Source: Saccostrea echinata
Taxonomy: Eukaryota
DNA length: 64,000 nt
Assembly (NCBI RefSeq): GCF_033153115.1
Contig: NW_026889765.1
Coordinates: 24,304,001 to 24,368,000, forward strand
Reading direction: 5' to 3'
Numbering within the stretch: position 1 is the first letter of the stretch; every line of letters starts with the position of its first letter. The position numbers and the translations under genes were made by a program. The notes beneath the pieces were generated by a model. The model saw only the letters and a list, made by a program, of their open reading frames with translations. It was not told the origin of the DNA and searched no databases. Positions 898 through 61,834 of the stretch are shown here, piece by piece.

Positions 898-999
898 TAT
901 ACATGTATATATGAAAATGTGCGAATTTCGAGATATAAGTAAAATTGAAATGAAAAGGCACATGTAAAATGGTAATATAACTCGACTCTATCATTATAA

Positions 1000-2075
1000 A
1001 GTCGCATTTGTCAATATTCCTATATCAACAAGATCACAAGTCATTCCCCCAGTGACCTGCCACCGACCTTCGCTAGTGTTTCAGCTGCAAATTAGAATGG
1101 AGACTGCTTTTCATGAAATATAATTCCAAGATAAACAGTCTGCAATTTCTCACTTCCAATCCTGAATTGAAACTGCGTGGTTGGTTTGGTTTGAACATAT
1201 TTTTTGTATAAATAATATACAAATGGTTTGAACACAAGTTCTAACAACTTACGAGGTTCTCACCATAAATGGATACAACTGTCAAGGTCTATATTATAGA
1301 GAAAAAAAAAATATTGATATATACAAACATATTTGTTTTAAACATACATTCATTACATGATAAATATATAACTAACTAGAGTTTTAGTGTAAGGCTGTAA
1401 TAATTAATTGAATCTTCCAGAATCTCTTATAAATTTTTGTACAGATTGAAAAATATATTTATTGATTTCAACATTTTGTGACTCATCTCCCCACAGAAGT
1501 AGGTGACAATCAATAATATTCAATTTAGTGTTTGGTTTAATAAGACACAGTAGGTTTCTTAATAGTTCCTCTCTAGCATGTTGATATTTGTTACATACAA
1601 CTGCGTGGTTGATGTCCCTTACGATTATGCACAACATTTGACTTTTCGCTGTTAACACTTAATCGCCATTTTATACACCAATCATAAAATAGGTCCAGTA
1701 AAACTTGCATATCATTTCATTTTCTGTTAATAACACGATATCTTCTGCGTATAAAAGCAAAGAAACTTTCTCATCATTGATTGGAATTCCAGTATTTGTT
1801 TCCTTAATATTCACAGCTAAGTCGTTAATGAAAATTGAGAACAATGTAGGTGATAAAGTATCTCCCTGACGAACCCCGATTTTACTTATAAACCAATTTG
1901 TATGAAAATTATTCAAGCGCACACATGATTCAATCTTCAGGTAAAGGTTAGAAATAGCATTATACACAAACCGTCAATTCCATTGAGCCTAAGTTTATAT
2001 TGTAACAGTTGCCTGTCCACCAAATCAAACGCTTTTTGAAAATCTATAAACGTTGCGAATGTCGACTTTTTCAGA
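1000..2075 (-). mobile_element. Decayed LINE (CR1/L2-group) reverse transcriptase fragment, interrupted by a younger LINE
   Basis: ORF 1967-1671 has RT motifs GVRQGDTLSPTLFSIFINDL and LLYAEDIVLL (YADD degenerated). FIDFQKAFDLVD lies upstream (~2010-2050). RT thumb-like YLGIIFHEK..LAKVGGRSLG resumes at ~1170-1040, beyond the insertion. Frameshifted. Confidence 0.85.
1184..1598 (-). mobile_element. 5'-truncated LINE 3' end with 13-bp TSD
   Basis: TSD AACTGCGTGGTTG at 1171-1183 and 1599-1611. Encodes an ORF2 C-terminus (LLLWGDESQNVEINKYIFQSVQKFIRDSGRF), then a 3' UTR and a short CAAAC-like tail. Confidence 0.8.
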
Positions 2076-2964
2076 GATGATAAATCCTTAATTTTATTTA
2101 ATTTATGAAAATTCGGAGCATTTGGAATGTTTATTTTGCTGCATTTGAGAAGGCGTTTTTTATGTATGGCACTGGATACTTTAACTAACGCTAATTGCTG
2201 CTTGGCTATAATTTGAAATTAATCTATCTATTCCTTTATCTTATTTCATGTTTATTTTGAAATATTCATTAAAACAAAAGACACACTGACAACGCGATAT
2301 TACGTAGATAACATGGAAAAAGGTTAAAATATTTTGTTTTGTCCCCAACATTAAGAAGGTTAACCTGTTTAATTAGAAGAATATCAAATCAATCCCCTCT
2401 AACAATAGTCTAAATGTCTGTTTCTAATTATCCATGCATAGTTGGGAAATATCTGACTATCAAGAGAGCCAACAATAAACGATTTCTTAGTACTTCGATC
2501 ATACTTACATATATTTGTAGCATAGATTTACTTGAAAAATTCCATTATACTGAGGCTTAGCTGGTGCAATACTTTAACTGTGTTATTCTCTTTAATAATA
2601 AAGGCAATTTATTATACTTTTTAGTTCAGTTGGAAAAGCAACATTACTCAATTAATAAGCAATTCCTAAATGAAGACACCATACCTTTTTTCACGAAGTG
2701 ATCTCTTGTATTTATTTCAAGGAGTCTATTTCTAGGGGTCTAGGGTGATCTTTGAAATCAATTTCATGAGTATCTTTAAAAAAAAAAAAAAAAAAAAAAA
2801 TTATTTCTCAGAAATAATTTATTAATAAAAATAAATATTAGCAAATAAAAGACGTCGGAGATTCATTGCAAGAATTTTGAATTATGTTTTGCAAAAAAAT
2901 ATAAATTTCAAGACTTTCCTAACAACTTGCTCGAAACATTTTGAAAAATTCAAATTCTTTGAGA

Positions 2965-3070
2965 AACAAGATGTGTTAGTGAAACAATGATGCCCCCGTA
3001 TGGCAGCTTATGGCAAAGGTTAAAGTTTCTCAAATGCAAGTCAAACTCCAAGGTCAAGGTCAAGAAATAA
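2965..3070 (-). mobile_element. Helentron/HINE-like fragment
   Basis: AAACAAGATGTG..GATGCCCCC end followed by TCAAGGTCAAGGTCAA motifs, like the longer HINE copies in this window. Confidence 0.4.
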
Positions 3071-3469
3071 AATTTAAATGGAAAGTTTATCCTTTCCAAA
3101 AGAAGATATTGGTTTTAACATGGTACTTGTCTAGCGATTTGTAGGTAATATAAACGAAAACAAACGATTCAATCCGCAGAGTTTCCTTACTGGTCAAGAC
3201 GTAAGGTAAAATCTTAAAGTACATAACTATCACGGTTATGACATTGACACGATTTCACTATATCTACTGAATATATATACCTGTATAATCTTGATCGCTG
3301 AATGGTTGTTTGAGTTGAGTCACAGATATCATAAATCTATAGCGCATCATCAGCATTATGCATAAGTAGTGAATGGCTTGAACGGTTTATTGACTGATGC
3401 AAGGGTAAGGGTTAAAAGTCACGTTTTGTACTTACTGTAATTAGAAATAATTACTTCAGGATCTCATAG

Positions 3470-3640
3470 GCAAACAGGTTTCATCATTATGAGCACCTTA
3501 TTACATCTGTTGGGACTAAATGTGGTGTCCTGAAATGTCCACCTTATGTCGGTGGAAGAGAAGTAATATATATAATCATATAATTGATTAATAGCATTAA
3601 TTATTTGAGCGGAAATAAATATTTTGATGGTATGGTATTG
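3470..3640 (+). pseudogene. Orphan last-exon and 3' UTR fragment of a short-chain collagen C4-like paralogue
   Basis: Translates YEHLITSVGTKCGVLKCPPYVGGREV versus FEHYFNPVGAKCGVMKCPPYVGGREVMCAVCSK in the gene at 8907-9127. The terminal MCAVCSK is missing. Downstream 3' UTR (..TTGATGGTATG.TATTGT) also matches 9140-9210. Confidence 0.8.
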
Positions 3641-3978
3641 TGTTATCATGTCAATAAAATGTTATCATGAAATAAAGTTCAATAAAATAAACTGAGAAAA
3701 AAAAGAAAAGTAAGAATTCTGTAAGTATATAGAATTTGCTGGAAAACAATCTGGGTGCTGCATTAACATGCCTGCTAATATATTGATATGTGATTCCAAT
3801 ATAAAAGGCTTATTCATCATATCATGGGAGAAGCAGAGAATAAACTAAGAAAGTACTGACATGACATATATGACATATACATGACTGACACATGTTAGTC
3901 TTTAATTTGTCTTGTATTTGACGCTGTGGATTAATTACGCAGCTTTGTTAAGGCTTTCCGAAGGCTAATACATGTATG

Positions 3979-4264
3979 TTTGTTTTTTGTACGTTGTTTA
4001 ACGTCCCTCTCGGGAATTTTTCACTCATATGGAGAAGCCACCACTTGCCGGTGGAGAGCTGCAAGTTTTGTCCTATACTCGGCACTTACGGCCATTGAGC
4101 AGTGAGGGATCTTTTTCGTGCCAGCACCACCTCGGTTTATATGGTCTCATCCGAAGGACCGGTCTTCACGTCCCACAGTGGGATTCGAACCCGCGACGTA
4201 AGGATCTACTCCTTACGCCGCAACTCTAGAGCAGACGCTCTAACCACTGCGCCACGCGGCGACT
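3979..4264 (-). mobile_element. tRNA-derived SINE with Deu/Nin-type core
   Basis: Minus strand has A box TGGCGCAGTGG, B box GGTTCGAATCCC, core CGGATGAGACC..AAACCGAGG and a simple CAAA tail. TSD GAAGGCTAATA(TG) at 3960-3978 (interrupted by CATGTA) and 4265-4277. Confidence 0.9.
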
Positions 4265-6802
4265 GAAGGCTAATATGAGATACATCCTTACTCTTTAATT
4301 TCAAGCGAGGTTTTGATTTTAATTTGTTAACTTTGTATAAATGCCAATTTGCAAAGGGACCCATAAGGTATTAATTGTTATAAAGAAGTTTTGTGATGCT
4401 ACGTGACTTAGTTGATTACGTCACAGACACTTATAATTTTTCTTAAATGTTGCACAAAAATCGCATCGTCGTAAGTGCATGACAAAATTATTGTGAACGT
4501 TTTATTTTATTCATAAGTCGATCAATCTTATTCTAACGTATAACAATATAATGTGCTGGGGCAAATCTGAATTTTATTTGTAATTAAAGTAAATAATTTA
4601 TGAGAACACAAAATAGGATAAAATGTCCACTATTCATCGCAATTTATACAAAAAGGGATATGTTACATACAATCCCCCAGCATCCAGATTCAGTCAGCGG
4701 ACATAACTCTATTACAGATTAATTCACACAGAACATCTCAATATATCCTTATTAATCGCATGTGCCAGTCTATTATATACATATATAAATTATATCTCTA
4801 TATATGGATATGTAATGGGGAACTTTTCATATTAAATCCTTTTTATGTTATTATTTGAATGCGCTTAATATGAAACAACGATGCTGTTTTGCAAAAATTC
4901 ACTAAATCACAGCACATTTAACCTTATAACAACATTTTAGACACTTGAATTGAACATGACCATAAAAAATATTTCAACATGTCATATGAACTGATTTCTG
5001 TGCTATTTTACGGACTGTTTTATCCTAGCAACGTTACTGTAGACTAATTTTTGCATTACCCTGTAGTGTAATTGCCTTTTTCTTAATAGAACAATAATTA
5101 TTTTAGTCTATCCTCTCCAGATACCTTAAGATTGCAATATCATATACTAGTTCCATGTAACCATTTACTTATTTATGACGTCAAAAATATCTTCATCGTT
5201 GGAAAAATTGTGAGATATTGGCGCATGGTAGCAAAATGTTGGAATAGATATTGACTTCGGAAAAAAAAACATAATTGGAAAAAATCTATCACTGTCTAGT
5301 TCATAAGCTGCTTTGAAAAAAATAATTGTAAACAGGAAAAAAAACTGATTATGATATATAATACGTAAAAGGAAAATGACGTTGTAAATAACGAAGAAAC
5401 CTGGATGAAATGGCACGCTTTAGGAATTAACTTTATGAAATGTGTACAGCCTAATATTGCATCGACGAGTAAAATCTTGGAATGCAGTTTGGAATTATAA
5501 AAACAGCTTAAGTCTATATGCAGCTAACAAAGAAATACATACCTTAATTCTTTTTCATATCATAATTTGATTAATTCTATGAATTATAGAAAATGATATT
5601 ACAGTTAAAATGGATTGTGTGTAAAAGATATAAGCCTTTGTTATTTTTTTTTTTCAATGGAAACTTATTTGATTAAAATCTGTAGATATGTCAGTAAATT
5701 TATTTGGAAGGAACAAAGGGCTTTAAAAATGTTTTCTGCATAAATTTTGCAACTGTAGTCCTGAAAATATAGGATATAAAAAGGAGCAAATACATGTAGC
5801 ATGATATTAAACTTAAGAGTACTATGTTTGGTGTATCATTACATTTAAATCTAATCTCTCCGTGAAACATCTGGAAAACGAGAAGCATTTATAGTATCAT
5901 ATTTTCTTTTCTAACCATCAAGTATAATATATATAATACGTTAGTATGTATTATATTCTATAAAGCCTACCTTCAATCCTTACACCTTTTCTATATTTCA
6001 AGGCTTAATTCTTTAAAGGTAGGAAAACATCAAACTTTTTTTTAATATTAATACTTAAAAGTATGAAAGAGTAACGTAATATACATTGCCATCATGCTCA
6101 ATTTATTTACGATTATATATACAAGCCTTCTCTGTCGTTCTACAAAAACGTGAGTAAAACATTTTTTAATGTCGCTACTAAATATACCGTTTTATCAATA
6201 TTATCATAATTTAAAAAATCGATTTCAATTCTAAGATTTTACTAAGACTTTACAAACATAGTTAACGTGGTTTTGTAAATGTTAAACGAGAAATAGACAG
6301 TTAAAGTTCTGACGTGAACAAAGAATAATGTTTTAAAAAACCTATAAAACCCATTCCCCTTCTTATGTTACATTTACAATGTTTGTTCACATTCATTTAT
6401 GACATTAAAATTCATCTGCCATACAAATACACGTAAAAGTTAAGGTCAGACGACACGTTCCTCGAATATCTGTTTTGTGTCTTTTCACAATGTATAGAAA
6501 ATTTTCATAATTATAATTATTTTGCGGTATTTAAACTGTTCTTTAAATGTCTTTTAAAATACACCAAAAAATGTGATATTGACAATTCAAGAGATTTCCC
6601 AATAGGATTATATAGAAAACACCATCATCTGTTATGCCTGGCAAGGTACCTAAAATTTTGGGAGGAAACTTGTTAAAGTAGCAATACTTCAATGACAAAT
6701 TCTTGGGAAAAATTATACATATATATTGGTGAACATGTCGTCTGACCTTAAAGAACATTAAAAGATCACGTTTACTTATCACGTGTTTATTTTATTCCTC
6801 AG

Positions 6803-9127
6803 ATGATTGGTCTTCTCTCCTTCCTTTTGTTGCTCCTTCACACAGCAGACGGAGAATCAAAGGCCGGAACTTGTAAAGACATGTTACAGGGCTACCTTAC
6901 AGAACAACTGTCGTCTGCTCTAGAGATAGAATCTCTAAAGCAAGAATTCAAAAGGTTCACTGATGTCATTGATAAATCTGTGAACACATTAAAGGGACAG
7001 GTGGAGGCTAGTCTCAGAAAGGAAGGTACTATGGTTATAAGAGATGCAAGTCCTTTGAATGAAGTCTTCCTTTCAAGATTAAAAATGCTAAATATTTCAT
7101 AGAAAATGCTGCATCCATTTTCCCGTATTTTTTAAATCATTTTTGACAGATAAAAGAAAAAGAAGCAGTGTTTATACAAGATGGGGGAAGAGGAAGTGTC
7201 CCTCTAATGCTGAATTAGTTTTTTCTGGTAAATCAAAGTCTTCAAACTCGTTTGATATACAGTAATTACTTTAAAATAATTAGAGATTAGAGAGGATTCT
7301 TCTAGATCTTTTTGAAATTCCTCTGCATCAAGCAGAGCTAATTTGGCATTGTTCATATATGGGTTACAGGGATTACTGCAGGGACATATCTTTCACAAGA
7401 CTCTTTGAATGTCGACACTCTGTGTTTACCGAAGGACCCAGAGTGGGGAAACAACACTTATTATAGCGATGTTGGAACCCGCCTTTTCGGCGCTTTGTAC
7501 CACACGAGAACCATCAATTATCACCGTAATTCTTTATTTGGTCATGGCGTTCCCTGTGCTGTATGCTTGGTTCATAATAGATCTCTTACAAAAGCATTTC
7601 CAGGTGAGAAACAAATTACAATAACTAGAAAAATTCAGAAATATCAATGACTATAAAGGTACTCACAAGAAATAGAAAACAGCCAGGAATCTCGTTGATA
7701 TTTAAATTACATTAATTAGAAGACAGAGATCTCACTGGTAGACCAATTACAACTACTAGAAAACAGTTATCTCACTGATATAGGCAAATAACAATAATTT
7801 GAGAAAAGTCAGGGATATTACTGATAAAGACAGATTTCATTAACTAGAAAAGGTCAGGGATAATTCTGTTAAAGATAAAATACAATAAAAATAGAGAACA
7901 TTCTGGGATCTCATTGATAAAGGGTAAAAAGAGTGCCTGAAAAAATAAAATTTACAAAGAAAAGGAGAACTCGGAAAAGTTTTTTATTAAAAGTCCACTC
8001 TTTGAACGGAAAAACAAGTAGATGGGAGCCAACTGTCCTTTCTAGATGAAAAAACAAGGTTAACTAAGGGAACTTTTTTGACCTGTGAGTTACTGAAAAC
8101 TCAACACTGCTCAGTTTTAGTTGACAATATATCAAATTTAACTTGGACCCTTTGTGACTGCATACCCATAACAAATGATGTAATTTTCTCGTTTGTCTAT
8201 GTATTATGATGTCATGAATTACATCATTATCCTCAAATACTGAAAATTTCTTCAAAAACAGCCGAAAGTTTACCCTATTTTTCAACATTTTATAGATCAT
8301 TTTTATAGATCACGAAAGAACTTTTTCTGAAGATTATCAAACTTATTCCTCATATTTTCTTTACTGAAGGTAAAAAAAAAATACACCCGTTTTCTGCAAA
8401 ATTTGAGAATATTGCAATTATTTCACAAAGACTGTTTTTAATACCAGACCCCAAGACCATAAAGTGAGAACAGACTTAAGTCAAAATTAAAAATAATAAT
8501 AATAACTTTTGTAATAATATAGTGATAATGAATCAAAAATATACCTATATATTGTTCGAATTTAAAATATTATACAAAACTTTAAAATTTTTATCAAATA
8601 TGTAAAATAAAACTGAAGATATTCAAAATTTTTTTACTTAAGTCTGTTCTTAGTTTATGGTTAAAATTTTGGAGCCTGGACTCTCAGAAGAAACTTTTAA
8701 TAGGAAAGGACAGCACATAGTCTCTACTTTATTTTGATGTTTGAAATATAGGACATGGAGTCTTGGTCAGTTAATGGTTTACTGACAGTGCCGGTTTATG
8801 GATAAAGTAAGCCTAGCTCTTTCCATACTGAATAAGTAAAAGACCTTTCTCAGACAAAAGTGGGGGAAAGAGCAGTACCCCGCCTAACTGTGTTTGTTAA
8901 TTACAGCAAGAAAAACGTGTTATAAAGGCTGGCGACTGGAGTACCAAGGATACCTTATGGCTGGAGCATCATATGTATGTGTGGACAAACACGCAGACAA
9001 ACTACCCGGTGGCAAGACTTATAGATTTGAACACTATTTTAATCCTGTTGGAGCTAAATGTGGTGTGATGAAATGTCCACCTTATGTTGGTGGAAGAGAA
9101 GTAATGTGTGCTGTCTGTTCCAAATGA
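6803..9127 (+). CDS. Secreted short-chain collagen C4-like (NC1-like Cys-rich domain) protein without Gly-X-Y repeats
   Basis: Exons 6803-7025, 7150-7227, 7370-7603 and 8907-9127, all GT-AG phase 1, give one open frame: signal peptide MIGLLSFLLLLLHTADG, coiled-coil-like region, then VYTRWGKRKCP..ELVFSG, LCLPKDPEWG, VPCAVC, FPARKTCYKGWRLEYQGYLMAG, CGVMKCPPY..REVMCAVCSK. An acceptor AG directly precedes the ATG, implying an upstream UTR exon. Confidence 0.85.
7605..7925. repeat. Degenerate ~45-bp minisatellite in intron 3
   Basis: Recurring AAATTACAATAACTAGAAAA..CAGGGATCTCACTGATA-like units, about 7 copies. Confidence 0.55.
8443..8680. mobile_element. MITE-like inverted repeat
   Basis: ACCATAAAGTGAGAACAGACTTAAGT (~8455-8481) mirrored by ACTTAAGTCTGTTCTTAGTTTATGGT (~8636-8661). 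Outer CCAG..CTGG ends. Confidence 0.55.
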
Positions 9128-9299
9128 TGAAATAAATAATATACAATCACATAATCAAACGCATTACTTAATAATTGAACGGAATTTTTATTGATGGTAT
9201 GATATTGTCGTTTTACTTTGTCCAACTTCACATTGAATAGTATGTAGATGAGAAGTAATGTTTACCGTCTGATTAAAACATGATTGTGACGTAAACCTT

Positions 9300-10600
9300 T
9301 TGTTTGTGTTGTCCATTCTATAGCTTAATGTTTAGCTAACTCCCCAAACAATCCATTAAGTTACCTGTAAGTGTCCATTCTTTTTGGAAAATTGTCCATT
9401 CTTTTAAGAATAGACAGTTTTTTCAAAAAGAATGGACAGTTAAAACAAACAGAATGGAGAGTTACAAACTTTGGAATGTGTTCAAGAGGGAAACAAAAAC
9501 AAATAGATTAAATACTTTTTAATTTACATGTAAATTACAAAAAGAACGCGGAGATAAAGTTAATCCAGAACACAATGACTGCACAGCATCCACTCGATTT
9601 TACTCTTTTAAATCCATGAATAATGCACATTATTTCAATACTCAAAACTAAATTTTCACAAAACTTGAATTCAAATGACACAATTTCACATCTGATTAAA
9701 TTTCGGAAAAATCATTCCCTCGAGGAGAATTCATTTTCAGATAGAAGTACGTATAGTACTAGTATATTAAATCCTCCACCCAGAAAATAGCTTGCACCAT
9801 GAACACTACGCTGCTGCAGTAAATATTTCGATAGAAAATAAATAAAAATGCAACATTTCCAAATTTGACTTGAAAAACATTTTCAGGTCGAAGATTGACT
9901 CATGGCTAATATAACACTCAGAACACAATTTGCATCTCACCATTACACTGCTGCAGTTGATATGTCCTCAAAAACAGAATTCAAATACTATATTTCTAGG
10001 TTTGATTCAAATTTGATCATCTGTATCTGTCGTCATAGTTCATTTTTGGGTCCAAATTTGGCTAATATTTCTTTTACTCTTACTTTTGTTTCCAGATCCA
10101 AATATCACTAATTTTGTGCATATTTTGGTTCATTAGAATTTGATTCTGTCATATACTCTCTCCATCACAGGAAAACATGTATGCCTTTACAATGCAAACT
10201 GTAAACTGATTTTGAAGCATCGCATACTTGTATAAATACTAGTATCCCAAAAATCCACCTGTAACTGTCCATTCTTAAGACAAAGACCTTTTGTTATTTG
10301 CATCTGGAAACACAATGGCTATTCAACAAATTGCTCTGCATCCCTAGCTCACCTGTGACTGTCCATTCCGATAAACAATGAACTTGTCATTGTATATCTG
10401 CTACCTGTCATATCTGATACCAGTTTTGTACATTTTTTATTTAATTTTCAGAACAAAGGAAATCATGTTTAAAGTAGGAGAAAGGCCTCAAACTGTTCAT
10501 TCTGTGAGAGAAAGAACTAATCTCGGGCCTACGGCCCTCGATTACTGTAGTTCTTTCTCTCACATAATGGACAGTTTTCGGCCTTTCTCCTTTGCTTAAT
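9300..10600. mobile_element. Non-autonomous Crypton-like element with terminal hairpin
   Basis: 44-bp inverted arms (10476-10519 / 10548-10591) around CTCGGGCCTACGGCCCTCG. The arm motif TGTCCATT/AATGGACA recurs many times at 9310-9460 and 10260-10370. Family assignment is from recalled architecture only. Confidence 0.5.
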
Positions 10601-11886: not shown

Positions 11887-12825
11887 TTACACATGATTTT
11901 TCTTACAGTGAATAAATAACCCGGAAGGTTGCTTGAATCTTTTGCTGCAGACTTCACAGGAATAGGGTTCGTCCATTGTGTGACGACGCTCGTGACAGCG
12001 TACATGTGACAACTGGCGAAACGACTTGTGACAAAATTTACAATTGTACGGCCTGGTGTCGGTATGAATTCTTGCGTGGATAATCAAATTTGTCTTGTTA
12101 TTAAACACTCGATAACATTGTTGACACTGAAAGTATTTTTTGCCCCGTTTCTCCAAATGTCTACCTGGTGAGATCGACGACTCTCTAGATATACTTTCCA
12201 TGTCTTTACTTCGAACATTATTCTTGGGACGACCACGTTTTCTAAAACTTGCCGTGTTGTTGTTTTCATCGCTTTCAATTTCAGCAAATGGAGTCCGTTT
12301 TTCTGCATCTAAAAATCTCTGCACTATGGCGCACTGTCTGTCCAACTTTCTTGAACTTTTACCTAATTCATTTACATGCCTATCTGTCATTTGACATGGC
12401 ATTGGTTTTTGCATACAGTTTTCTAAGTTCAATAAATCTGTACAATAACTGTTCTCTGCCTTTTCTGTTTTCGGCGTGAAAGTTGATTTCTCTCTCGTGC
12501 AGTTGCCTGTGCAGTTGCCTTCACCGTCCATGTGATGTATTAGATCCTGTCGTCTGCAAAATCCTCTCGAACAGCACGGACATTGCGTCATCAGATCCGT
12601 CACATGGCGTCGCCATAGGTTTTCCGGTGACAGAAGCGGAACAGAATGACAGAAGAGATGCATGTCCAGTTCTATTTTCCGACAGTATGCTTTTCCGCAC
12701 ACCATGCAAAAATGAAGTTTTCGGCAAATACCAGACCGGACGTGCGACATGTTTTGATTTGAACTTCCATTCATGTTTCTAAATCTGACACTAGATGATG
12801 CTCGATGTTCTTCGGCAAAATGTTT
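11887..12825 (-). CDS. C2H2 zinc-finger protein with AT-hook
   Basis: ORF 12774-11887 has two N-terminal fingers (CMVC..H..H; CPCC..HH..C), an AT-hook RKRGRPK, and three C-terminal linked C2H2 fingers (HTDTRPY and HTMDEPY linkers). The frame stays open to a TTTTTTAG acceptor at 12826, so an upstream exon is likely. Confidence 0.85.
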   Translation of the reverse strand, partial: KHFAEEHRASSSVRFRNMNGSSNQNMSHVRSGICRKLHFCMVCGKAYCRKIELDMHLFCHSVPLLSPENLWRRHVTDLMTQCPCCSRGFCRRQDLIHHMDGEGNCTGNCTREKSTFTPKTEKAENSYCTDLLNLENCMQKPMPCQMTDRHVNELGKSSRKLDRQCAIVQRFLDAEKRTPFAEIESDENNNTASFRKRGRPKNNVRSKDMESISRESSISPGRHLEKRGKKYFQCQQCYRVFNNKTNLIIHARIHTDTRPYNCKFCHKSFRQLSHVRCHERRHTMDEPYSCEVCSKRFKQPSGLFIHCKKNHV

Positions 12826-25764: not shown

Positions 25765-26744
25765 CCACTTATAAATATGTAAAAAAAAAAAAAATGAAAC
25801 CCACAATTTCAACAATATTATATAAAAAATGAGGCTTGAGTTCAAGTCTTAAAGAAAGTGTAGGACTTCTTGCTAATGTCAATTGTTGAACATCGGTATA
25901 CATGTATTTCTGTGTAAAGCTTAATTTGAACCCTTTTACGGTATAACTTCCCCTTCATCCCCATTCCCAACCCTTACTTTTCAATTTACACTGCATGGTG
26001 GTGGGTGATGTTTGCATCGATCTTTTAAACATATGAAATAAAAGATTTCAAAGCTAACATATCAACTGTGCGCGGATCCGGGATTTTTTTCCGGGAAGGT
26101 GGGGGGGGGGGGGGGGAGCAAACTCAAAAAATATGACACGGAAATTGTTAATAAGAAAAAGAGAGCAATTTTTTTTTTTAATCTGCCCGAAACAGGGAAA
26201 ACCTATTTCGTTTGAGTGTGTGTGTGTATATACATGCGTGTATGGGGGGGGGGGGGTGTCGATTTTTCTCAAGCTAATTTAATTCTTCTGATACACGACT
26301 CCCCTTACCATTTCACAATGTGTCCATGTGTTTCCCCGTGGTGGAGTGGGGGTACCAAGGTAACATTTTTTCGTGTATAACATATAATCTAGTGGTAAGG
26401 AAAAGTTTTCTGGTATAGTCTGTGGATGCAACATCAAGTTTGATAAATAAAGGAACCCTTGTCCTACAACGGAAACCTTCACTATATTCAATGCATCTGG
26501 AAATGTAGATCTGATCAAGCTTTCGAAGCAAGTACTGGTAGTGTTCAAACACATCCCTAGATGCACCATCCATGCAAATTTTGTCATCATAGGGCTTACA
26601 TTTAGTTACTCGGAAATGGATCTGCATGCTTCAAATACTTTAACCCGCGGGTCACTCATCCATGCATGCAGGTCACGTCCAACATCCGAAACAAGTCTGG
26701 TAGAGTGCGTCACAAGATGCAAATCATACATGCATATTCTCTCA

Positions 26745-48600: not shown

Positions 48601-50605
48601 ACAGAACTGAAAGCAAACCATTATTTCCACATCATCAATAATATCAGGATTAAAAATCTCTTCATAAAAGATTTGTACTTTAAATACAGCATTATTGGGA
48701 GTGAAACAGTATACTGCAGTACTGATTCATTGTGATATTTATTGTCAGTTTCAAACACAGTATAAATTGTCCATTTTCAGTTTGGGCCACATTTTGATCA
48801 GGACAGTTATTCAATTAGGTTTGTCATTTAATATTTCATTAAAACACACTTAAAAGCATGATTAAATTTTAAAAACATGATTTATGAAAACCAACACTCG
48901 ATCCAATCTACAGGTAGTCAATGTCTTCTAGTCAATTTGCAAGGAAACTAGATTATTGCTTATAGTGAAAAAAAAAAAAACACAAAATTAAAACAATTTT
49001 GAATTTTGTTTCTTTCAATCAAAATGTATCAAAATTAAAGGTACCCTGGCAAAATTATACAAGACATATAGTACCATGATAATTAAGTTCATCCTTACAT
49101 CATATAAACCATAGTCAGGGTTTAAAATTCTTTGAAATTCACCAACAAATACATGTATAAACATGTACCTCCCCATAGAAATTAGTCCAACATTATTTTC
49201 AGGGTTGGAGCGAGTTTTGGAATGACACACAAGATTGACAGCATCTTGTTGAGCCTGAAATCGTGTTGGAACAAAGTCTCCATTCCTCATATAATCACTG
49301 CTGTCAACACTGTGAAAGAAAAGGCAGTCTTGTTAAAAACTAAAAGAGAAGTCTGTGATCAGCATTTAATAGTGACAGCATCACAAAACACTGCTTGCAC
49401 TGCAAGCTCTAATGACAATGCCTGGGAGAAGAGAAAATTTCAGACTTTGCACATTGATCCAAATATTTTTCTTCCTGCAGTAACCACTGCACCCACAATT
49501 CTTAGCGAATTGCATCTCGCCACAAACAATGTTCTCGCGGTTCAAGAAGTTCCAAGAAAAAATAAACTCACCTTGATTATAAATAGATATAAAACAGGGT
49601 TGTGATAAAGATCAAAGCGGCTAACCTAGCAACTAGGTGGTAGATATCTATTTCTATTGAACGGACAGTTAACCTAGCTGCTAAGTGTTAAATTTGGAAT
49701 AAAAATACATGAAAAACTTATTTTTGGAACCAAAAAGAGTTTATTTCAAGCAAAAATGTATATGTAAATTTACATTTAATTCATCAATATGTAGAAAACA
49801 ATGTCCTTTTTTGTTAAAATCGTGTGCTTTGCAAAGTTGTAACTAAGGAGGCCATCTTAAATTTGGTACTTAGCTTCAAATATTTATGCTATCTCTCGCT
49901 ATTTAGCGGCTAGACTAGCTCTCCGTTCAAGAGCGTAGCTTTATGCAGATGCTACGTAGCAGCTGTTGAACGCAACCCAGCTAAAATAGTAGATTAAACG
50001 TTCTTAATTAAATTAGCACTGACTTCATAAACTTACATACGTCATGTGACGTCAGAGTCTAGACATAATAAATATCACGTGTGATTGGAAGAGCCTGAAT
50101 TAAATTAAAACCAAAATGTGTAGTTCTGCGCTCACCCTTACAGTCACACTGTCGACATATTATGCATAAAATAATGAACAATTTCCAGTAAAGTGTCATT
50201 GAGGCACTATTCAGAGTCTTAAGCTTATTATTCATGTTATTCTGAGTTGATGACAAGAGAAAAATCAGAGCCCCCATCCTATCCAAAGAAAACAAAGACA
50301 GTGGTCGATGTTCAACTTTATTAAAATTGAAAAAATGTAACAAACAAAACAAAATCGTCAAAACAACAAGTAAGACTTTATTTTCCATAAAGTGCATTTT
50401 CTAACACTCAATTTAGCTTACTCATGACACCAATTCAATAGTCAAACGACTTATTGGTGTATTTCTGATCTATTCTTTCTCCGTGGGTATTTTATGTTAT
50501 CATTTGAACATTTTAAAATGCAAATCCTGATTAAACAGCATCAACAATGAGAAAATAAAGGGCTAACTACATAACTTACCAAACTACTGTGCTTTCCAGA
50601 ACCAT
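42640..50605 (-). CDS. PSMD4: 26S proteasome non-ATPase regulatory subunit 4 (Rpn10/S5a)
   Basis: 11 exons: 50605-50580, 49309-49169, 48606-48492, 48292-48206, 45620-45552, 45313-45252, 44936-44783, 44549-44441, 44280-44128, 43203-43127, 42807-42640. vWA domain [49 protein letters not shown], UIMs ([16 protein letters not shown]; [13 protein letters not shown]), C-terminal [17 protein letters not shown]. Confidence 0.97.
42870..42939. repeat. 36-bp tandem duplication in last PSMD4 intron
   Basis: CAAGAGTCAATCAGCCATGATTCAAACAAGCAAG present twice. Confidence 0.85.
45728..46893 (-). mobile_element. HINE (Helentron-associated) in PSMD4 intron
   Basis: Minus-strand 5' TTAGGGCCCCGCAAGGATTTGCGGGTGCCCTA hairpin plus (GTCT/GTCC)n. 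The matching subterminal AGGGCCCCGC is at ~45751 and the end is CTAGTT. Internal ~435-bp duplicated unit (TGACCTTAACTTCAAAACAAAC at ~46018 and ~46453). Confidence 0.8.
47022..47853. mobile_element. Non-autonomous DNA transposon with ~36-bp TIRs
   Basis: CAGTCAGGGGTGAGACTGAAATCTGTCATTCTGAAAA / TTTTCAGAATGACAGATTTCAGTCTCGCCCGACTG. Flanks CATAC / TATAC. Confidence 0.8.
47867..48135. mobile_element. MITE with GG..CC termini and 3-bp TSD (Zator/Harbinger-like)
   Basis: CTA|GGCCATCTT..TGTTTGCTTACCCTCTCC ... GGAGAGGGGTAAACAAATA..AAGATGGCC|CTA. Confidence 0.8.
49598..49977. mobile_element. Harbinger-like MITE (CAG TSD) in PSMD4 intron 1
   Basis: CAG|GGTTG..CAACC|CAG with internal TAGC/GCTA-rich repeats. 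TIRs are degenerate beyond ~7 bp. Confidence 0.45.
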
Positions 50606-51140: not shown

Positions 51141-54100
51141 ATGTCATCGATTGAAGAAGCGAAGGGCGATATCGCAACAGACGAGAAGGTTGTTATTGCC
51201 TCGTACAAACTCAAATAAACAGCATGAATCGTATAATAATATCATGATCATAACAATGTATATTGAACGATTATTCTTGTAACTTATTTACTTGGAACCA
51301 TAGGGGCTCGTTTTTAGGATGATGTATTAAGTGATTTTCTATGTCTGCCTTAATATACATCTGTACATGATATACTGATTAAAATAAAACTTGAAAATTG
51401 TAGATTTAAAAAAAAATGTATTTCATCATGTTCAATGCATATAAAAAAGATACATGGGTTGACACTCCATTCAGCTTGGATTCCAGGGTGTGTCTCGGTT
51501 TATACTTGAATTTTATCAATTTCTACATTTTTCCTATTTGTGCTTGGTGAGATCTTGGTCATCTTACACTTGCTGTATAAAAACATACAGTGGACCAAAG
51601 CATGATATCAAAATCAATGAAAGTGAAGATTTCTAAATATAAACAATAGTTTATTTCCAATCAATTCTAAATAGTTAGGATTCATCACTCCCACCGCTTT
51701 TTTTATACTGCATGTTTTACACAGCAAATGCAACTCAGCAGACAATAGAATAATGTTATTCAATCATTTATGCAGAGTGTATATGGCTTGGATCTAAAGA
51801 AATCTGATTTTAATTAGATCAAATCTTGATAACTTCAACCAGTCAATCATCATTAAAATAAAAATAAGTTTTAGTTTAATGAATAACAATTTGCTTTGTG
51901 TCAAAAAATAGGGTAGTGAAACTCCTAAGAAAGTTCACAGAATGAAAGCAAAAAAGGACCAGGTAGATGAAGTAGACCCTGTGTACAAAAAGTTATCAGC
52001 AATAAATGGGGAGATTAATCGCATGTCTTTGAAGGAACTACAGGACAAGTTGACTGAATTAAAACTTGATGCAAGGTATTAGTATATTTGTCAAATCTTT
52101 AACGAGGTTCGCTCCTGAGCTTTTGAGCAGATTCTTATCTTAACCTATATTTAAAAAATTCTGCATAATGTTTTAATTCTTACAATAAATTTGGATTCTA
52201 CAATGCCAATTTAACTATATTCAGTTAAAACTCCATGATTAAATTCCATACCAAACGCATTAAGTGAGGAACTATATTTTGTGGCGGAGGGTTTTTTAGA
52301 AGAAAATGATCATTTTTTCTCTTTCTAAGTATTTAAAGTATGTTAAGTTTGGATTCCTATATTTACATGCAGTCTGCACACATAGTTATTTTGTGCAGTG
52401 GACTGTATTATACTGGTCCTAAATTATCTATTAAATAAACTGTCATGAATTCTATCATCATATTTGATAAATATAGGAAATATATTGTGGAAATGAAGAA
52501 AAAATAGCCCTAATTTAAGCTTAAAATTAGCACTATTTTAGTAATATCTAAAAATTAACATCACAGACCCCCACTTTTAATTTTCTTTTCTGAATATATA
52601 CAATACTTTTAACCATTCTTCTTAAGTTCAGTAAAATGTCATTACTTTCAAATGATTTTTTTGCTTGTTAAATTTTAATGCCAGAAAAATGAAAATGTTT
52701 GAGTGCAAAAAGGTCAAATAATTGAACATGCGGAGTAATTCGAAAATTTCTTCGTTGTTACAAATTTTAATGTGTCTATTTAAGATGAAATAAGACTGTG
52801 TTTGTTAACCATAATTTATTTGAACAAAAAATATTGAAGGAAAAACTTTAAAAATTGATTTATGTGTAAGACGTATTTACAGTGCAAAAAGGTCAAACTA
52901 AATGCTCTGTAGCACCAAAAGAAGCGCATTGACCCCCATTTTTTGTTTTGATTTTTAATAAAGCTATGTGTATAAATTCTAAAAATATACTTGATAAAAA
53001 ATTCTCATTACTTTTGATGGCAGGATCCAACCTCCTTAATAATATTGTTTCAGTTTGGAAAGCACTCATTGTAAAAAATTCTTCAGAGTGTTTTTCAATA
53101 AGGGCATCTGCAAATATAAAAAAAAATGTAATGAAAAGAAATAATTATAGGGATATTTAGCTTAGTACATGTATTTGGAATGAGGACAGAAGAGGGAAGA
53201 TATGTCTTAGTCTCATATACATGCAACAGTAAACATGGTAAAATGTCTGTTTGAATCTAGAATGTGTAAAGTACATGCAACACAAAAGGACTTATTCCCA
53301 GCAGATTTGCTAATCATTATTCTGATATGATTGTTAAGCTTTTCAGCTACCTTTCCTGAATATATAATAATTTTGATCATCTTTTAAAAGTTATGAAGTA
53401 TAGAGAGGCACACCATATGTAATTACTTGAATATGTTAACTTTAAAGACATAGATCTCATTCTAAAGGGCAATTGGAGTATCCCTGTACTGAGAATATAT
53501 AAAGTTAAATGATTTATTGGTAGCATGTCCTCATTTAAAGTGATTTTGTCTGTATCATCATGATCATTATATTGATTTAACCTAGGACTATACATGTAAT
53601 ATGATGTTTGTTTAATTAGAGGTTCCAAAGACATTCTACAGAAAAGACTGAAGATGCATTTCAAGCAGAGGAAGTTAATGAAAGCTAAAATAAAGCCACC
53701 TGTGGAATGTACATATGATTATTTAATTGTCATTGATTTCGAAGCAACGTGTCAAGAGAACAACTATAATTACACCCATGAGATCATTGAATTTCCAGCA
53801 GTGTTAGTAGACTGCCACACCAGAGAAATAGTAAGGACATAATTAACATCATAAACCATGGCCAAAATGTACTCCCATTCTGGCTGTGGTTAAATGAGAC
53901 AAGAATTTTCCTAGCTCATTAAAATTTTGACCAATGCAAGTAAAGCATAGTCAGAAAATAACCTTTGATGAAACCTTTCATTATTCAATCAGAGTTTTCA
54001 TAACATATTGTTTATTGTTGAATTCAATTGCTGCAATATAAACAGTTGTTTTCATTGGTTTTATAACATGCCATCACACATTAGGCATTATTATTCAAGA

Positions 54101-56149
54101 TTATGAGACTTGATGTGTTCAAACAGCCGTGGGTAGGAGAAAGCTATGAATGGATTCTGGACCATGGCTTAAGACGATGGGACAATATATAGTTGTCCTG
54201 AACAAGAAATGAAAATTTTTCTTAGTAGCAGCTAATTTTGATTTGCTGATTTGGTTTCAAAATATTTTTTTTTTATTTTTAAGGTTGATGAATTTCATGA
54301 ATACTGTAAACCTGTTCTTAATCCAAGATTGACAGAATTTTGCAGTAGTCTTACTGGTATTTCACAGGTTTGTTAGAAGGCATTATGATTCAGAATAAGT
54401 TTTATTAAAAACTCCATAAATACAAAACAATATGCAGAGACTTGGTTTCTCAAATTTTAACAAAAATGTCATTTTCTTTAAAATTTTTCTTAAAATATAC
54501 CTTTTGCATCCCCCCCCCCCCCCCAATAAAGTGGAGTGCATGTTTAGAGTTATTTGTGTTCAAAATCAGCCTCTGCAAGAAAATACTGACACATTGCCAG
54601 TCAATTCAAAAATAATTTGTGTCATAAAAACAAACATTTGACATTGTTCAATGCCAACCAAAAATTTGTTATCTCCTAGCAATGAACTTTAAGGGGATAT
54701 AGTAATGTGTATGGGTATCTGCCAATTGTTCTATCAAAGTGTCCTTTTTCATGTGTATCATTTAAAAAAAAATAAGTGCAGGATTTAAATTGGAAAAAAA
54801 ATAGAAGAAAAGATTTGATGTAACTTATTCCAAAGTTGTTCAATTATGAATGTTGGTGCAAAACAGGGTCTTCTCAAGATTTTCAAGGTTCATTTCTGAG
54901 AAAACAACCTGCTTTTCACATGATATAATTTGTCAAATTAAAATGCATGCATCCTGATATCGTAGAATCTGATATGGTATAAAATAATTTAATATAAAAT
55001 TTATTTTGAATACTAGTAATTTGTCTAAATTTTGTAATAAATAGGAAAAAAAAATACCACAGAAAGGTAATATCCTGGAAATTTTAATTAAGGTCCCTGC
55101 GATAAAAGTTTATCATGGCACACCTCAATGCATTTATCTTCCTTTTTCCAGAGAGTTGTAGATAAATCAGATGAATTTCCAGCTGTCCTTGACAGAATGC
55201 AGTCATGGATGACTAGTCATTACTTAGGAATACATCATACCTTTGCCATTGTCACTGATGGGTAAGTTACTATAGCAACTGTATTATGTGTAGACCGGAG
55301 GTGGATAGTGTGTCTTTCTATATTTGATTTTGAGTATATACAGAAGAGGAGTGGATCCAGGATTCTAGTAGTAAAGGAGTGTAACAGTTACTCAATTTTA
55401 ACTTAATGCTAAATTTAACATCATCCATTCATTCTTTTACATAGGTACATGTATATTTTAGATGTATTGATCTTTTCTGGTTGGTATTTAAAGTAAAATG
55501 TAACTTTAAAAAGCTAGATAAGTAAAGAATATGCGATATCTATATAATCGAAGCACGAAATTAACATAAAGACATGACTGTCACTAATCTTGATCATAGA
55601 GGTCAGATGAATCAAATTTCATGAAATATAGTTTGTTGAAATTAATTCTTCCTTATTAATTATTAATTGAATCATGATGTTTATTTGTTTTTTAACAGAC
55701 CATGGGATATGAGTCGTTTTCTTCAAATGCAATGTAATTTGAGCAAGATAACCTTCCCTCATTGGGGAAAAAAGTGGATAAACATTCGCAAAGCTTATTC
55801 AAGCCACTATTCTTGTAAACGTATGAACCTGGAAGAAATGTTGATAAATCTGGGACTTAAATTTGAAGGAACACAGCACTGTGGATTACATGATTCCAGG
55901 AATATAGCCAAGATTGCTATTCAGCTTTTGGAGGATGGCTGTGATTTGGTGAAAAACGAATTTCTGCATGTGGCACAACCTCCACCTGGGCCTAAGGGTT
56001 CCAGAGAAAATGGATCTTGGGGTGGTGACAATAAAACTAGGTCAAAGGAGGAAATTGAACAGAGACTAGAAGCACTTAAGTTAGAATCCAAGAACTTTGT
56101 TGAAGAGAATCAAGATTTATTGGAATACCACAAATTACAGTCAGCATGA
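51141..56149 (+). CDS. ERI1: 3'-5' exoribonuclease 1 (ERI1/3'hExo; SAP + DEDDh exonuclease)
   Basis: Exons 51141-51188, 51912-52075, 53620-53830, 54284-54367, 55152-55261 and 55699-56149. SAP DPVYKKLSAINGEINRMSLKELQDKL..RGSKDILQKRLK. ExoI VIDFEATC..HEIIEFPAV, LTEFCSSLTGISQ, VTDGPWDMSRFL, WINIRKAY, ExoIII HCGLHDSRNIA. The first exon is less certain. Confidence 0.93.
52103..53035 (+). mobile_element. 933-bp TTAA-TSD non-autonomous DNA transposon (copy 1)
   Basis: TTAA|CGAGGTTCGCTCC ... GGATCCAACCTCC|TTAA. Near-identical inverted copy at 61870-63368. Confidence 0.9.
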
Positions 56150-57770: not shown

Positions 57771-58005
57771 ATACCAGTCTAACATTAGTCCATCTTATAT
57801 AATCCAAATTATTACCATCTTGCATCAGTCCACCTAATATAATCCAAATAAGCAAATTCAATTAATTGTGATTCCAAATAAGCAAATTCAAATAATTGTG
57901 ACCCCCCTTTTTTCGGTGACGTAGTGGTTGGGATACAATTATTTGTGGCATATTGTAAATATCTTGCTTGTGTATCCTTCAAACATCTTATAATATTTTC
58001 CTATG

Positions 58006-58709: not shown

Positions 58710-58971
58710 TAGACTCCTGACAAATTTCATTCGATATCTTCGGGCTTGCTTCTCTCATTGAGAAGCACCAATCAAATTGAAGTAGACAGATAATGTTAAC
58801 AGAAAGGAATCAGTTGACACCTTAGTGGACGTGTTACGCATTGTTTTATTCACCGAAAGGCTTAATATGATTGGTTGAGATATAAGAAAAACTATCAAGA
58901 TTTGTAATTTTCCTGAAAGACGTCGCTGCAGTCAGCCCGCAAGATGCCGAATGAAATTTGTCAGGGGTCAA
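58710..58971. mobile_element. MITE with ~35-bp TIRs (Academ-like TAG end)
   Basis: TAGACTCCTGACAAATTTCATTCGATATCTTCGGGCT / AGCCCGCAAGATGCCGAATGAAATTTGTCAGGGGTC. Confidence 0.7.
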
Positions 58972-59494
58972 ACGGCAACGTGTTGACTCAGGACCTCTGA
59001 CGTTGTGAGGATGTGTCGTTGCTAGAAAAAACTTCAGTTGATATTGTGAAAATGCTCGAGATAAACTATGCATAATGATAATGAACCGTGCACACACATG
59101 AATACGTTAAGCACACATTTTATGTATTATGATAATTACAAATTCTCTAAATGTATATCACATTCATGGACTCACTGTATGCCATAAAGCACCTTTTATC
59201 TTGACTTATGGACATATCTTTAAAGGATTACGAGAGGTTAAATTCATATATAACTGCTGGATGTCTGGGCAGCTATTATTTCGTAATTCTTTATTGAATA
59301 TACCAAAATAAATTTAATTTATTAACTAATTTTAGTTAAAAGATCTAAAGATCTAAATGTACACGAACTTCAGGCGAACTAAAAAAATTAATACTTTTTC
59401 CGAGATTTTATTAATATGACTGTACATGGTACATGTTTACTAACTTCCTTCAAAGTAACATCCAAAGGTAAAAAATAACTTTTATTTCAGTTGC

Positions 59495-61834
59495 TCAACA
59501 ACTTATTTCATTGTATTGGTTTGTGAGGAATATGTGAAGTGACGTCACTTGGCCCATGCTGTACAAGCATTCTGGTACTGTTTGGAACATTTTCTGAAAA
59601 AATTAAAGTAAAAATTTTGAATTACATACTAATCTATCACTCGATATGATAATGCTTTATGACAAACAATTATTCTTGAAAAAAAGTGAAGTACTTCTAT
59701 GCTGTAACATATAGACTTAAAACTATCAATATTACCTAATTAACATATTAAGTTACAGTGTGTATAGTTTATTAGTGTCTTACTGAATACATTGTTGGTG
59801 GGATTTTCTCAAAAACTGGTGACCGCACATCAGACACAAAGAACCAGGAAAAGGCCACCAGTTTACCTCTGTCATACATCAAGTAAAATGGCGCCAGTTC
59901 CTCGCAGTACATATCTCGTCGGACATTAAAATGGTACTGGTTACCTATCATCATCAAATAAAGCAATGGATATATTTGTATAAATAAAGAAAAAAGAAGT
60001 ACAATACTTCTTCTAAGTTCATCACAATTCTATGCCCGCATTAGAGGAAGTTCTTTCCAAGAAATATAAATTTTAAATACAGTTGAACTTCGGGATCTCG
60101 AACACTGAAATTTCGAATACCATGGATATGTCTAAGTGAATTGGAAGTCCAAACCCCTTATTTCTTTAAGTAATTTACCCTGGATATCTCGAATCCTCGG
60201 ATATCTCGAAGTTTTTCTCGGTCCTATGAAGTTCGAGATAATGAGGTATTTCGTGAAAAAAAAATGGATTCTACAGTTATATGATTGGACAAGTAACACC
60301 CCCCCCCCCCACGAGGATATAACCTACCTAATCTTGGCATACACTGTCCCTGTCCCCAGAGGGTCTCCCTAATTGTAGTTTCGTCTATGGGCACAGGAAC
60401 GGAATCGGACATGGGATTTGGTCCATTCTGGAAATACAACCCCGTTCCTATCCCCTCCGATACCAGCTGAGACTCTGTTCTTGTAGAGGCACATATTTTC
60501 GCTGTAGTAAAAAAAAATACTATACTTGCAAACAACTGTCAAAGTGTCCTATACAATTTTTGCAAGTTTACATACATGTACATACTTAATTTGTCTCACT
60601 TGCAGGTCTTAACTGATTTTTTTTTTTAATGTTTTTAAGTGAAAAATGTAATATCTGGTATTTTTTTTCTCATCCAAATTGTATAATTTTGGCACACTTC
60701 TTCACATTTCAAAATCTTACAGGGTTCCATGAAATATGCGGTAACGAAGAGTAGGTTTCCTTCTTGGACAAATGGGCGGGGCTTCAGATTTCTTGTTGGA
60801 TAGCCATTGGACAAATTATCTGGGATCTGCAAACATGAAAAAAAAAAAAATAGAATTTTTGCACAATCCTATGAATGGTCACACATATAGTTTACGTCAT
60901 ATCCGTCCCACCTTTAGTTAGCTTAATTTCGGGGGGAAAAGGGCCTGTTCAAGATATTTTTCACAAAATCCCATACACAAATACATTGCAGGTTCTTATA
61001 TACAATACAAAAAGCCAATTCAAATGTTTTCGATATATATGATCTTGCCTTCCTGTACAACTTTGACCTTGTTTTGCACTGAAATATACATATTCTTTTA
61101 TGACCTTGATCTCCTGTATAATTAAGGAATGTTTTTAAGTTTTGTGTGAGTTATTGATTATACCGTGTAAATCACACAGACTTGTCACGTAGGCATATTT
61201 CATGAAACGCGCTAGCGCTTCATGAAAAATATGCCTACGTGCAAGTCTGTGTGATTTACATGTACACACCAATAATTCACACTAAACTTAAAAACATTCC
61301 TTATATTTACATCTTACAAGTTTAAAAGCACAAATAATATACTCAATATTTGAATTTCTCACTGCCCTATATCATTACATTTTTATTTACGTCTGTAGCC
61401 TCATTGTGACGTCACTTTAGCGCGAGTTTCACCGTGTATATTTCTACTCGTGAGTATACACAAAATGACTTTCAAATCAATTTCACAGTTGGCATAGGAG
61501 AAAAACACAGCAAATGTAAATATGTAACCTTGGCTTCACATCTTTTTTTCCCCCTTTTCTACAAGTTTCAAAGAAACTCTGAAGCTTAATACACAGATTC
61601 GTATTATTTTCATCCATTATGTTGTACTATTTTGGAAAGCTCATATCAAAGAAACAAGTTGCATTTCTTTCCATTTACCTTTGAACGCGGGCATTCATAT
61701 TCTATGGACATATTACTTGTTTATAGTCCTTACCCCCGTTTGAAGACCCGCAATAAGACCCTGAGAATCGTAAATGAGTACCACAGCTGGATCGTTGTTT
61801 CTCCAATAGCGCTTGCCAATAAAGTTGACGGATC
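59495..61834 (-). CDS. Uncharacterised protein, 5'-incomplete (five exons)
   Basis: Exons 61834-61734, 60826-60721, 60501-60328, 59944-59784 and 59593-59495 splice in frame: GSVNFIGKRYWRNNDPAVVLIYDSQGLIAGLQTG|IPDNLSNGYP..VTAYFMEP|SKICAST..GTGLYFQNGPNP..WGQGQCMPRL|GNQYHFNVRRDMYCEELAPFYLMYDRGKLVAFSW..|KMFQTVPECL..SLHIFLTNQYNEISC*. Upstream exons were not found in the window. Confidence 0.8.
60079..60256. mobile_element. Tc1/pogo-type MITE
   Basis: TA|CAGTTGAACTTCGGGATCTCGAAC start, internal GATATCTCGAA repeats, inverted GTTCGAGATA near the right end. Confidence 0.65.
61123..61525. mobile_element. Crypton-like non-autonomous element with ~85-bp inverted arms
   Basis: TAAGGAATGTTTTTAAGTTT..GTAAATCACACAGACTTG..CGTAGGCATATTT..GCGCTAGCGC..ATATGCCTACG..CAAGTCTGTGTGATTTAC..AAACTTAAAAACATTCCTTA (61123-61303). 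Confidence 0.6.

Follow-up and report, generated by a model that had tools for sequence, protein, structure and literature searches.

The window analyzed here is a stretch of 64,000 nt from the oyster Saccostrea echinata (assembly GCF_033153115.1, contig NW_026889765.1, positions 24,304,001 to 24,368,000 of the forward strand), with a G+C content of 29-37%, and its subject is the palindromic octamer TACATGTA, which reads TA-CATG-TA. Host genes are represented by a zinc-finger gene at 11887-12774, whose closest named protein (77% identical) belongs to Saccostrea cucullata, and by exons of a haspin-like kinase, a short-chain dehydrogenase, an exonuclease and a VWA protein. Upstream of the exon with the haspin kinase domain (29969-30304, minus strand) lies an acidic, serine-rich open frame of 326 codons (34618-35598, minus strand) with no Pfam match, possibly the exon that encodes the disordered N terminus in the haspin-like gene. 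Among the repeats are a transfer RNA (tRNA)-derived short interspersed nuclear element (SINE; 3978-4264, minus strand) with a 13-base target-site duplication, a tandem repeat with monomers of about 170 bases (the 'HINE' monomers, 16952-17942), several miniature inverted-repeat elements and a palindrome at 61115-61311. An exact count gave 42 octamers in the window, none of them inside the five recognised exons, which total 3,042 bases and would be expected to hold about 2.

These sites are given here without strand. One lies in the left target-site duplication of the SINE (3969-3976), one in a monomer of the tandem repeat (17517-17524) and one in the right arm of the palindrome (61257-61264). 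The octamer at 33829-33836 ends a (TA)n run, and the one at 49150-49157 stands just past the VWA-matching part of a minus-strand open frame, probably in an intron after the splice donor. Two stacked pairs, TACATGTACATGTA, occupy 14244-14257 (octamers at 14244 and 14250) and 20847-20860 (20847 and 20853). Two tight clusters of four octamers were also noted, at 23768-23919 (152 bases; 23768-23775, 23818-23825, 23890-23897 and 23912-23919) and at 29499-29731 (233 bases; 29499-29506, 29601-29608, 29698-29705 and 29724-29731). In the first half of the window the other sites are 900-907, 5791-5798, 9525-9532, 14676-14683, 15057-15064, 15336-15343, 15693-15700, 18098-18105, 18483-18490, 20217-20224, 23263-23270, 23545-23552, 25581-25588, 25899-25906 and 31336-31343. 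They are followed by 33109-33116, 34394-34401, 35934-35941, 36910-36917, 41177-41184, 41710-41717, 53166-53173, 53591-53598, 55446-55453 and 60573-60580. The contexts of the 42 sites are unrelated and mostly unique.

A preliminary description of this DNA had spoken of about 40 copies, far above chance, and the count of 42 at the coordinates it listed bears this out. Shuffles of the window that preserve dinucleotides gave a mean of 1.48 copies and a maximum of 6, and none of 100 reached 42; Markov models trained on the window predicted 1.8 (order 1), 3.0 (order 2) and 4.4 (order 3), so that the expectation was 1.5-4.4 overall. Models of orders 5-6 do come near 42, but only through training on the hexamers and heptamers of the word itself. 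TACATGTA was the most frequent palindromic octamer of the window, the runner-up AAATATTT having 27 copies, and raw octamer counts place it among homopolymer-like words. We then considered a sample of 30 ten-kb pieces (L001-L030) taken at round coordinates from 13 contigs, which together with the window (W) makes a 364-kb set holding 145 octamers. In the 300-kb sample, 103 copies were found for 7.9 (order 1) or 15.1 (order 3) expected, at least one of them in 26 of the 30 pieces, and the excess holds over a higher-order background. By z-score the word ranked 8th among the octamers of the sample and first among those that are not simple, since all seven above it are simple-repeat words. In the whole assembly (923,105,932 bases in 425 contigs) we counted 311,761 copies, or one per 2.96 kb, compared to 104,634 for the reversed word ATGTACAT of the same composition. 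The density of one per 1.5 kb announced in the preliminary description is thus correct locally, in the window, but averaged over the genome it falls to one per 3 kb.

The excess requires the complete TA-CATG-TA. Other flanks around ACATGT stayed near expectation in the sample (AACATGTT, 16 versus 16-19; GACATGTC, 3 versus 3-4.5; CACATGTG, 9 versus 4-6), and the control word TAGATCTA showed no excess (8 versus 4-6). When the 16 palindromic words of the form TA-XYY'X'-TA were compared in the 364-kb set, only TACATGTA was prominent besides (TA)4, with 145 copies for 9.7-19.4 expected. TACTAGTA was a weak third among palindromic TA-NNNN-TA words (13 versus 4-5). In comparison with all 32,310 TAs, the flanks of TACATGTA are enriched in A at position -3 (0.55 versus 0.38) and in purines at position -1 (0.77 versus 0.54); the mirrored preference downstream carries no weight as evidence, since a palindrome counted on one strand must show it. 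Density was over-dispersed (mean 4.0 and variance 9.2 per 10 kb), and 13 gaps between neighbouring octamers fell in the range of 7-150 bases for 6.6 expected under a Poisson distribution, about a twofold rise. The two-octamer stack TACATGTACATGTA occurs 4 times in the 364-kb set, and triple stacks 85 times in the genome.

Three internal comparisons between a modified and an unmodified site had been proposed in the preliminary description, and two of them show a clean insertion of six bases (+6) at TA. In the SINE, the left target-site duplication (3960-3978) reads GAAGGCTAATA-CATGTA-TG and the right one (4265-4277) reads GAAGGCTAATATG; an alignment of 18 copies confirmed the position of the element, its tail and its duplication. 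Since the right duplication copy is without CATGTA, the six bases entered after the SINE had inserted. In the tandem repeat, the monomer at 17517 reads AATA-CATGTA-CATAGG compared to AATACATAGG in two sister monomers. The comparison that did not stand is that of the palindrome (61257), whose arms are of equal length and whose global alignment showed scattered one-base gaps and substitutions and no 6-base gap. The tandem repeat of about 170 bases includes poly-C/G stretches, is also present in L003, L011, L013, L014, L020 and L026, and is the most repeated family of the 364-kb set, with up to 43 paralogous matches per position.

To these we added a self-alignment of the 364-kb set by BLAST (2,850 high-scoring segment pairs), in which 15 of the 145 octamers fall within a paralogous alignment. 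Nine of the comparisons were informative, and six showed a 6-base gap at TA opposite TACATGTA. Four of these are clean: L006:4696 (against three paralogues), L009:1459, L017:5044 and L018:3686; two are messier, W:17517 appearing in the BLAST alignment as a 5- or 6-base gap and L028:3451 having mismatches nearby. Gaps of another length were found at L004:3211 (4 or 8 bases) and L029:3495 (7 bases), and an origin by point substitution, which the preliminary description had named as a contrary outcome, was seen in just one of the nine (L029:3599, G/A, TACATATA). Two further alignments were too poor to read, and four sites of L029 were identical in both arms of an inverted duplication with 92% identity. 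That duplication (L029:63-1686 and 2600-9900) is large, has arms about 91-92% identical over blocks of 0.9-2.1 kb and contains internal tandem units of about 350 bases; the four octamers are conserved between its arms. TA stood on both sides of the extra bases at W:3969, W:17517, L006:4696, L009:1459, L017:5044 and L018:3686, and in the 16 SINE copies described below. The pre-insertion sites at W:4265-4277, L006, L009 and L018 hold no CATG, and the insert was therefore not copied from the neighbouring sequence. Slippage is possible only where units are stacked (L017:5044).

The SINE family of the window allowed the same event to be counted across the genome. We defined SINE site 1 as a 5-base interval that holds one or two TAs between two short flank words. 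Its length was unchanged in 10,436 copies and increased by 1-10 bases in 201. Among the first 100 longer copies listed, 78 had gained one or two bases, 4 had gained three, 7 four, 2 five and 6 six, with one copy each at seven, eight and nine. Exactly six extra bases were present in 13 copies genome-wide, of which 8 carry TACATGTA, and all 8 word matches at this site are +6. Another interval of this SINE, site 2, is +6 in 26 copies, 8 of which carry the word; a ninth word-bearing copy is +8. For both sites together, TACATGTA accounts for 16 of the 39 exact +6 copies. A random 6-base insertion would make the word on the order of once in a thousand cases, or less often, and this proportion therefore implies recurrent, independent writing of one sequence. 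The 16 scarred copies lie at 16 different places; two of them, 37 kb apart on one contig, may share descent. The family itself carries a (CAAA)n-like tail and divides into at least two subfamilies with distinct tRNA-like halves; 10,436 genome copies retain, letter for letter, one 21-base pair of flank words, and other copies were seen in L003, L007, L009, L011, L012, L016, L017, L020, L021 and L022.

Taken together, the paralogue gaps and the SINE counts support a recurrent process that changes TA into TA-CATG-TA, a fixed 6-base insertion, at independent places. The observation put forward in the preliminary description is real and strong, and is partly confirmed, one of its three internal comparisons being the exception. 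We consider that TACATGTA is probably the scar left by the excision of a cut-and-paste transposon that targets TA and behaves like Tc1/mariner elements, and thus a mutational word and not a functional one; that a transposon was the writer, and that its ends read CA..TG, is what we infer. Such an element would insert at TA and duplicate it. On excision in the germ line, the flanking DNA would retain a few terminal bases from either end of the element, and the break would be sealed by end joining as TA-CATG-TA, a net gain of six bases. Each jump would leave one scar at the donor site while the copy number of the element need not rise; since one scar is written per jump in this way, scars can greatly outnumber elements. 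The nearly uniform +6 outcome would point to overhangs that pair, unlike the non-pairing 2-base CA overhangs of Caenorhabditis elegans Tc1. The overhangs could be of three bases (CAT), joined through a 2-base microhomology with one base filled on each strand, or of four bases (CATG), which are self-complementary and could simply be ligated. The mechanism would predict element ends reading CAT(G) and a stagger of 3 or 4 bases.

Some properties of the word bear on the age and number of such scars. The genome holds roughly 265,000 copies of the word above expectation, and with 0.0888 TA per base we estimate that about 0.3% of TAs (roughly one in 300) carry a scar. Only 15 of the 145 octamers lie in the 26.8% of the 364-kb set for which a paralogue can still be aligned (binomial p = 2e-6), which is what accumulation of scars with time would predict, since repeats that still align are young. 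The 24 one-mismatch neighbours of TACATGTA are modestly raised (437 versus 367 expected), as they should be if scars decay; set next to an excess of about 126 intact octamers, this rise suggests that most recognisable scars are not very old. Besides, TACTAGTA, the weak third word mentioned above, may represent another kind of scar, far less common, left by elements with CT..AG ends. TACATACATGTA and its complement were found 7 times in the 364-kb set for 0.23 expected; the composite words TACATACATGTA and TACATGTATGTA, with 4 and 3 copies for 0.1 expected each, look like a +4 event beside a +6 scar or a 4-base duplication of the scar. There was no sign of longer retained ends in the 364-kb set, TACATGCATGTA being absent and TACATATGTA present twice for 1.5 expected.

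Several observations weigh against a transposon as the writer, beginning with the source itself. No TA-flanked element with CA..TG ends was found in the 364-kb set by scans for terminal inverted repeats (TIR), which used exact seeds, by repeat-boundary and nested-insertion scans or by counts of the words that follow TACA; these scans exclude families of roughly ten thousand copies or more, not rarer ones. The Tc1/mariner reading of the preliminary description is only partly supported, by the fixed, recurrent +6 at TA but not by an element. No transposase was detected in the window or the sample by Pfam scans of 28 open frames. The TA-flanked miniature transposable elements with inverted repeats (MITEs) of the 364-kb set begin with GG or CC and not with CA, and the scar words expected from MITE and TIR families are flat (TAGGCCTA, 5 versus 1.8-2.6; TACCGGTA, 2 versus 1.5; TAGTACTA, 4 versus 3.5-5.2). 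In a blind tally of 882 paralogue gaps, the CATGTA class made up 3 of 46 six-base events; many other six-base gaps left in this tally are variants inherited within tandem arrays, which makes the tally alone weak and the SINE-site counts the better test. The length of the scar must be added. In C. elegans, the scar of somatic Tc1 excision is of 4 bases, either TATGTA or TACATA, in 78% of cases (PMC12632400). The oyster spectrum is dominated by +6, with +4 scars absent from SINE site 1, where TATGTA does not occur and TACATA occurs in two copies, both +2 and 840 bases apart. In the sample, the +4 words are barely raised (TATGTA, 177 versus 136-167; TACATA, 199 versus 132-174). The statement in the preliminary description that Tc1/Tc3 excision leaves TA-CA-TG-TA is accordingly only partly right, the main somatic Tc1 scar being the +4 one (PMC12632400).

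The elements encountered in these scans are as follows. TA-flanked MITEs of 142-152 bases with ends GGTCAC(C/T)GTGACCT are present at L009:7533-7675, L017:1514-1655 and L017:2323-2474; another of 235 bases, with ends CCGTATATCCG, lies within a repeat at L014:8162-8398, its 2-base duplication being TA. The words matching the ends of these two types are TAGGCCTA and TACCGGTA. A third TIR family flagged as TA-flanked begins with GT; it comprises the element of 548-553 bases with inverted ends (GTCCGAAATATCTG) seen at 61995-62542 of the window and at L005:988-1540, and for the window copy the nested-insertion scan (overlap 10) instead points to a putative target-site duplication no longer than about 10 bases. 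One candidate source, L003:916-1366, was rejected, as it is the interior of a larger palindromic repeat (L003:900-1382) whose ends are not CA. This 483-base element has inverted arms of 87 bases that are 82% complementary, its ends read GATATG.., and no clear TA duplication was seen; a genome search returned 983 first-pass candidates and 39 other copies at 92-94% identity. Other routes to the octamer were also discarded. The ends of P elements read CATG, but P elements make 8-base duplications, which are absent here. Palindromic additions of the hAT type were rejected because the pre-insertion sites lack CA, and an 8-base target duplication of the octamer because TACATGTATACATGTA does not occur in the 364-kb set. 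At the genome level, a search for DDE_3 (PF13358, Tc1-like) gave 828 first-pass candidates, and all 150 that were scored exceed the curated Pfam cut-off. Many of the scored loci have stop-free open frames of 300-390 residues, and the occurrence of identical scores within groups is suggestive of recent families. As judged from these frames, the genome contains hundreds of apparently intact Tc1-like genes. The preliminary description had held that the scars are far denser than intact elements, and the writing was indeed far more frequent than any candidate source seen.

The missing element leads to the explanation in which the writer is not a transposon at all. A host process, such as a TA-directed nuclease or a domesticated transposase followed by a fixed repair, could write CATG between duplicated TAs. 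It would account for 145 scars next to zero CA..TG elements in the 364-kb set and for the unusual uniformity of the outcome, SINE site 1 having +6 but no +4 scars; moreover, a preprint describes Tc1-like transposase genes of pteriomorph bivalves that are without inverted repeats and look domesticated (10.1101/656579). However, no repair pathway is known to add a fixed, untemplated CATG, TA duplication together with terminal bases is the exact geometry of transposon excision, hundreds of Tc1-like genes appear intact in this genome, and 364 kb is too small to exclude families below about 10,000 copies. We regard such a process as unlikely. Selection is a further possibility, the octamer being then a functional word that is kept or spread, for example as the binding site of a protein that reads a CATG core. 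A perfect palindrome is the type of site read by dimeric DNA-binding proteins, and the over-dispersed density and the short-range clustering reported above would agree with it. But the same six bases were inserted de novo into dead SINE copies and into a target-site duplication, the sites have unrelated contexts, and selection would have difficulty in maintaining a word that occurs once every 3 kb, whether in introns, in repeats or between genes. Selection also leaves unexplained why the word arises by +6 at TA rather than by point changes from near-matches, and we find it very improbable.

Two explanations dispense with any dedicated process. The octamer could derive from the ordinary decay of TA/CA/TG microsatellites, through substitution within (TA)n or through slippage of TACATG units. 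The word TATATATA is indeed very common (717 copies in the 364-kb set), the site at 33829 adjoins a (TA)n run, the comparison at L029:3599 shows a G/A substitution, and the stacked units could grow by slippage. Nevertheless, ATA..TAT is present on both sides in just 2 of the 145 sites, and other derivatives of (TA)4 by two transitions are not enriched (TATGCATA, 20 versus 10.5-12.5 in the 364-kb set; TGTATACA, 18 versus 8-15 in the sample). Six of the nine informative comparisons are 6-base gaps into sequence without CATG, and the 16 SINE copies gained the word independently at sites that are not repetitive. This explanation is largely refuted here and keeps a slim chance at best. As for an artefact of sequencing or of assembly polishing, the public runs found come from a single sample and amount to three very small contig sets (share 0.08-0.09) that reach 13-16 of the 30 bins of 18000-23990; they show no indel at any octamer in the part they cover and are uninformative on polymorphism. 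One contig from this other data set (X2, record 9, 18342-18495) nevertheless spans the octamer at 18483-18490 with no gap. Four sites are common to both arms of the 92%-identical inverted duplication and hence predate it, the one-mismatch derivatives are enriched, and we know of no platform error that inserts CATGTA at TA. An artefact is hardly credible.

Returning to the excision scar of a TA-targeting transposon, we tentatively propose a narrower version of it, which we hold to be possible and no better than that: a single TA-targeting lineage, or a host-tamed derivative of its transposase, may have written about 300,000 identical TA-CATG-TA scars through a self-pairing CAT or CATG overhang geometry. 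If this is true, these scars would be a leading class of small insertions and the strongest complex k-mer signal of the genome, the self-pairing cleavage geometry would be one not yet described for Tc1/mariner elements, and scar counts would offer a direct record of past transposition in bivalves that does not depend on copy number. If the octamers are scars, oysters would in the past have seen much more cut-and-paste transposition than their current copy numbers imply, and a large share of the 6-base insertions in a very polymorphic animal would have one mechanical cause. The number of scars per TA, sorted by sequence age, would then be a measurable quantity for dating transposon activity. 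For annotation, TACATGTA should not be taken for a regulatory motif in oysters without further evidence. Excision footprints are textbook knowledge, usually described one locus at a time; here, what is probably such a footprint is the most over-represented complex octamer of a genome, as judged from the 300-kb sample. We found no report of this octamer, or of any footprint, as a genome-wide k-mer excess in bivalves or elsewhere, in a search that left most subscription journals outside.

In comparison with known systems, the retention of terminal bases beside the duplicated TA at excision is established for Tc1, Tc3 and their relatives. Like the footprints of Tc1 and Tc3 in C. elegans, the oyster scar lies at TA, keeps TA on both sides and has CA and TG between them, which corresponds to the retention of two terminal bases from each CA..TG end; the setting is also alike, in a genome with many DDE_3 transposase genes. 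It is unlike them in its scale of about 3e5 scars. The flank context of the oyster sites may resemble the AT-rich palindromic target preference reported for Tc1 and Sleeping Beauty. For the latter, the canonical footprint is TAC(A/T)GTA, a +5 product of 3-base CAG overhangs that pair, which makes the product nearly uniform. The oyster scar shares with this mechanism the TA duplication and the terminal bases, but it is +6 with CATG and not +5; words of the Sleeping Beauty type are mildly raised in the sample (TACAGTA, 47 versus 20-33; TACTGTA, 40 versus 20-30). In a survey of rice, excisions of MITEs and other transposons have been counted through their footprints between close genomes (PMC4423477). 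As in that survey, footprints of cut-and-paste elements can be counted across a genome; unlike its comparison of two genomes for named families, the oyster scars emerge as a k-mer signal in a single genome. Overall, the class of mechanism is familiar; the oyster scars stand apart by their scale, by a spectrum of uniform +6 and by the lack of a visible source.

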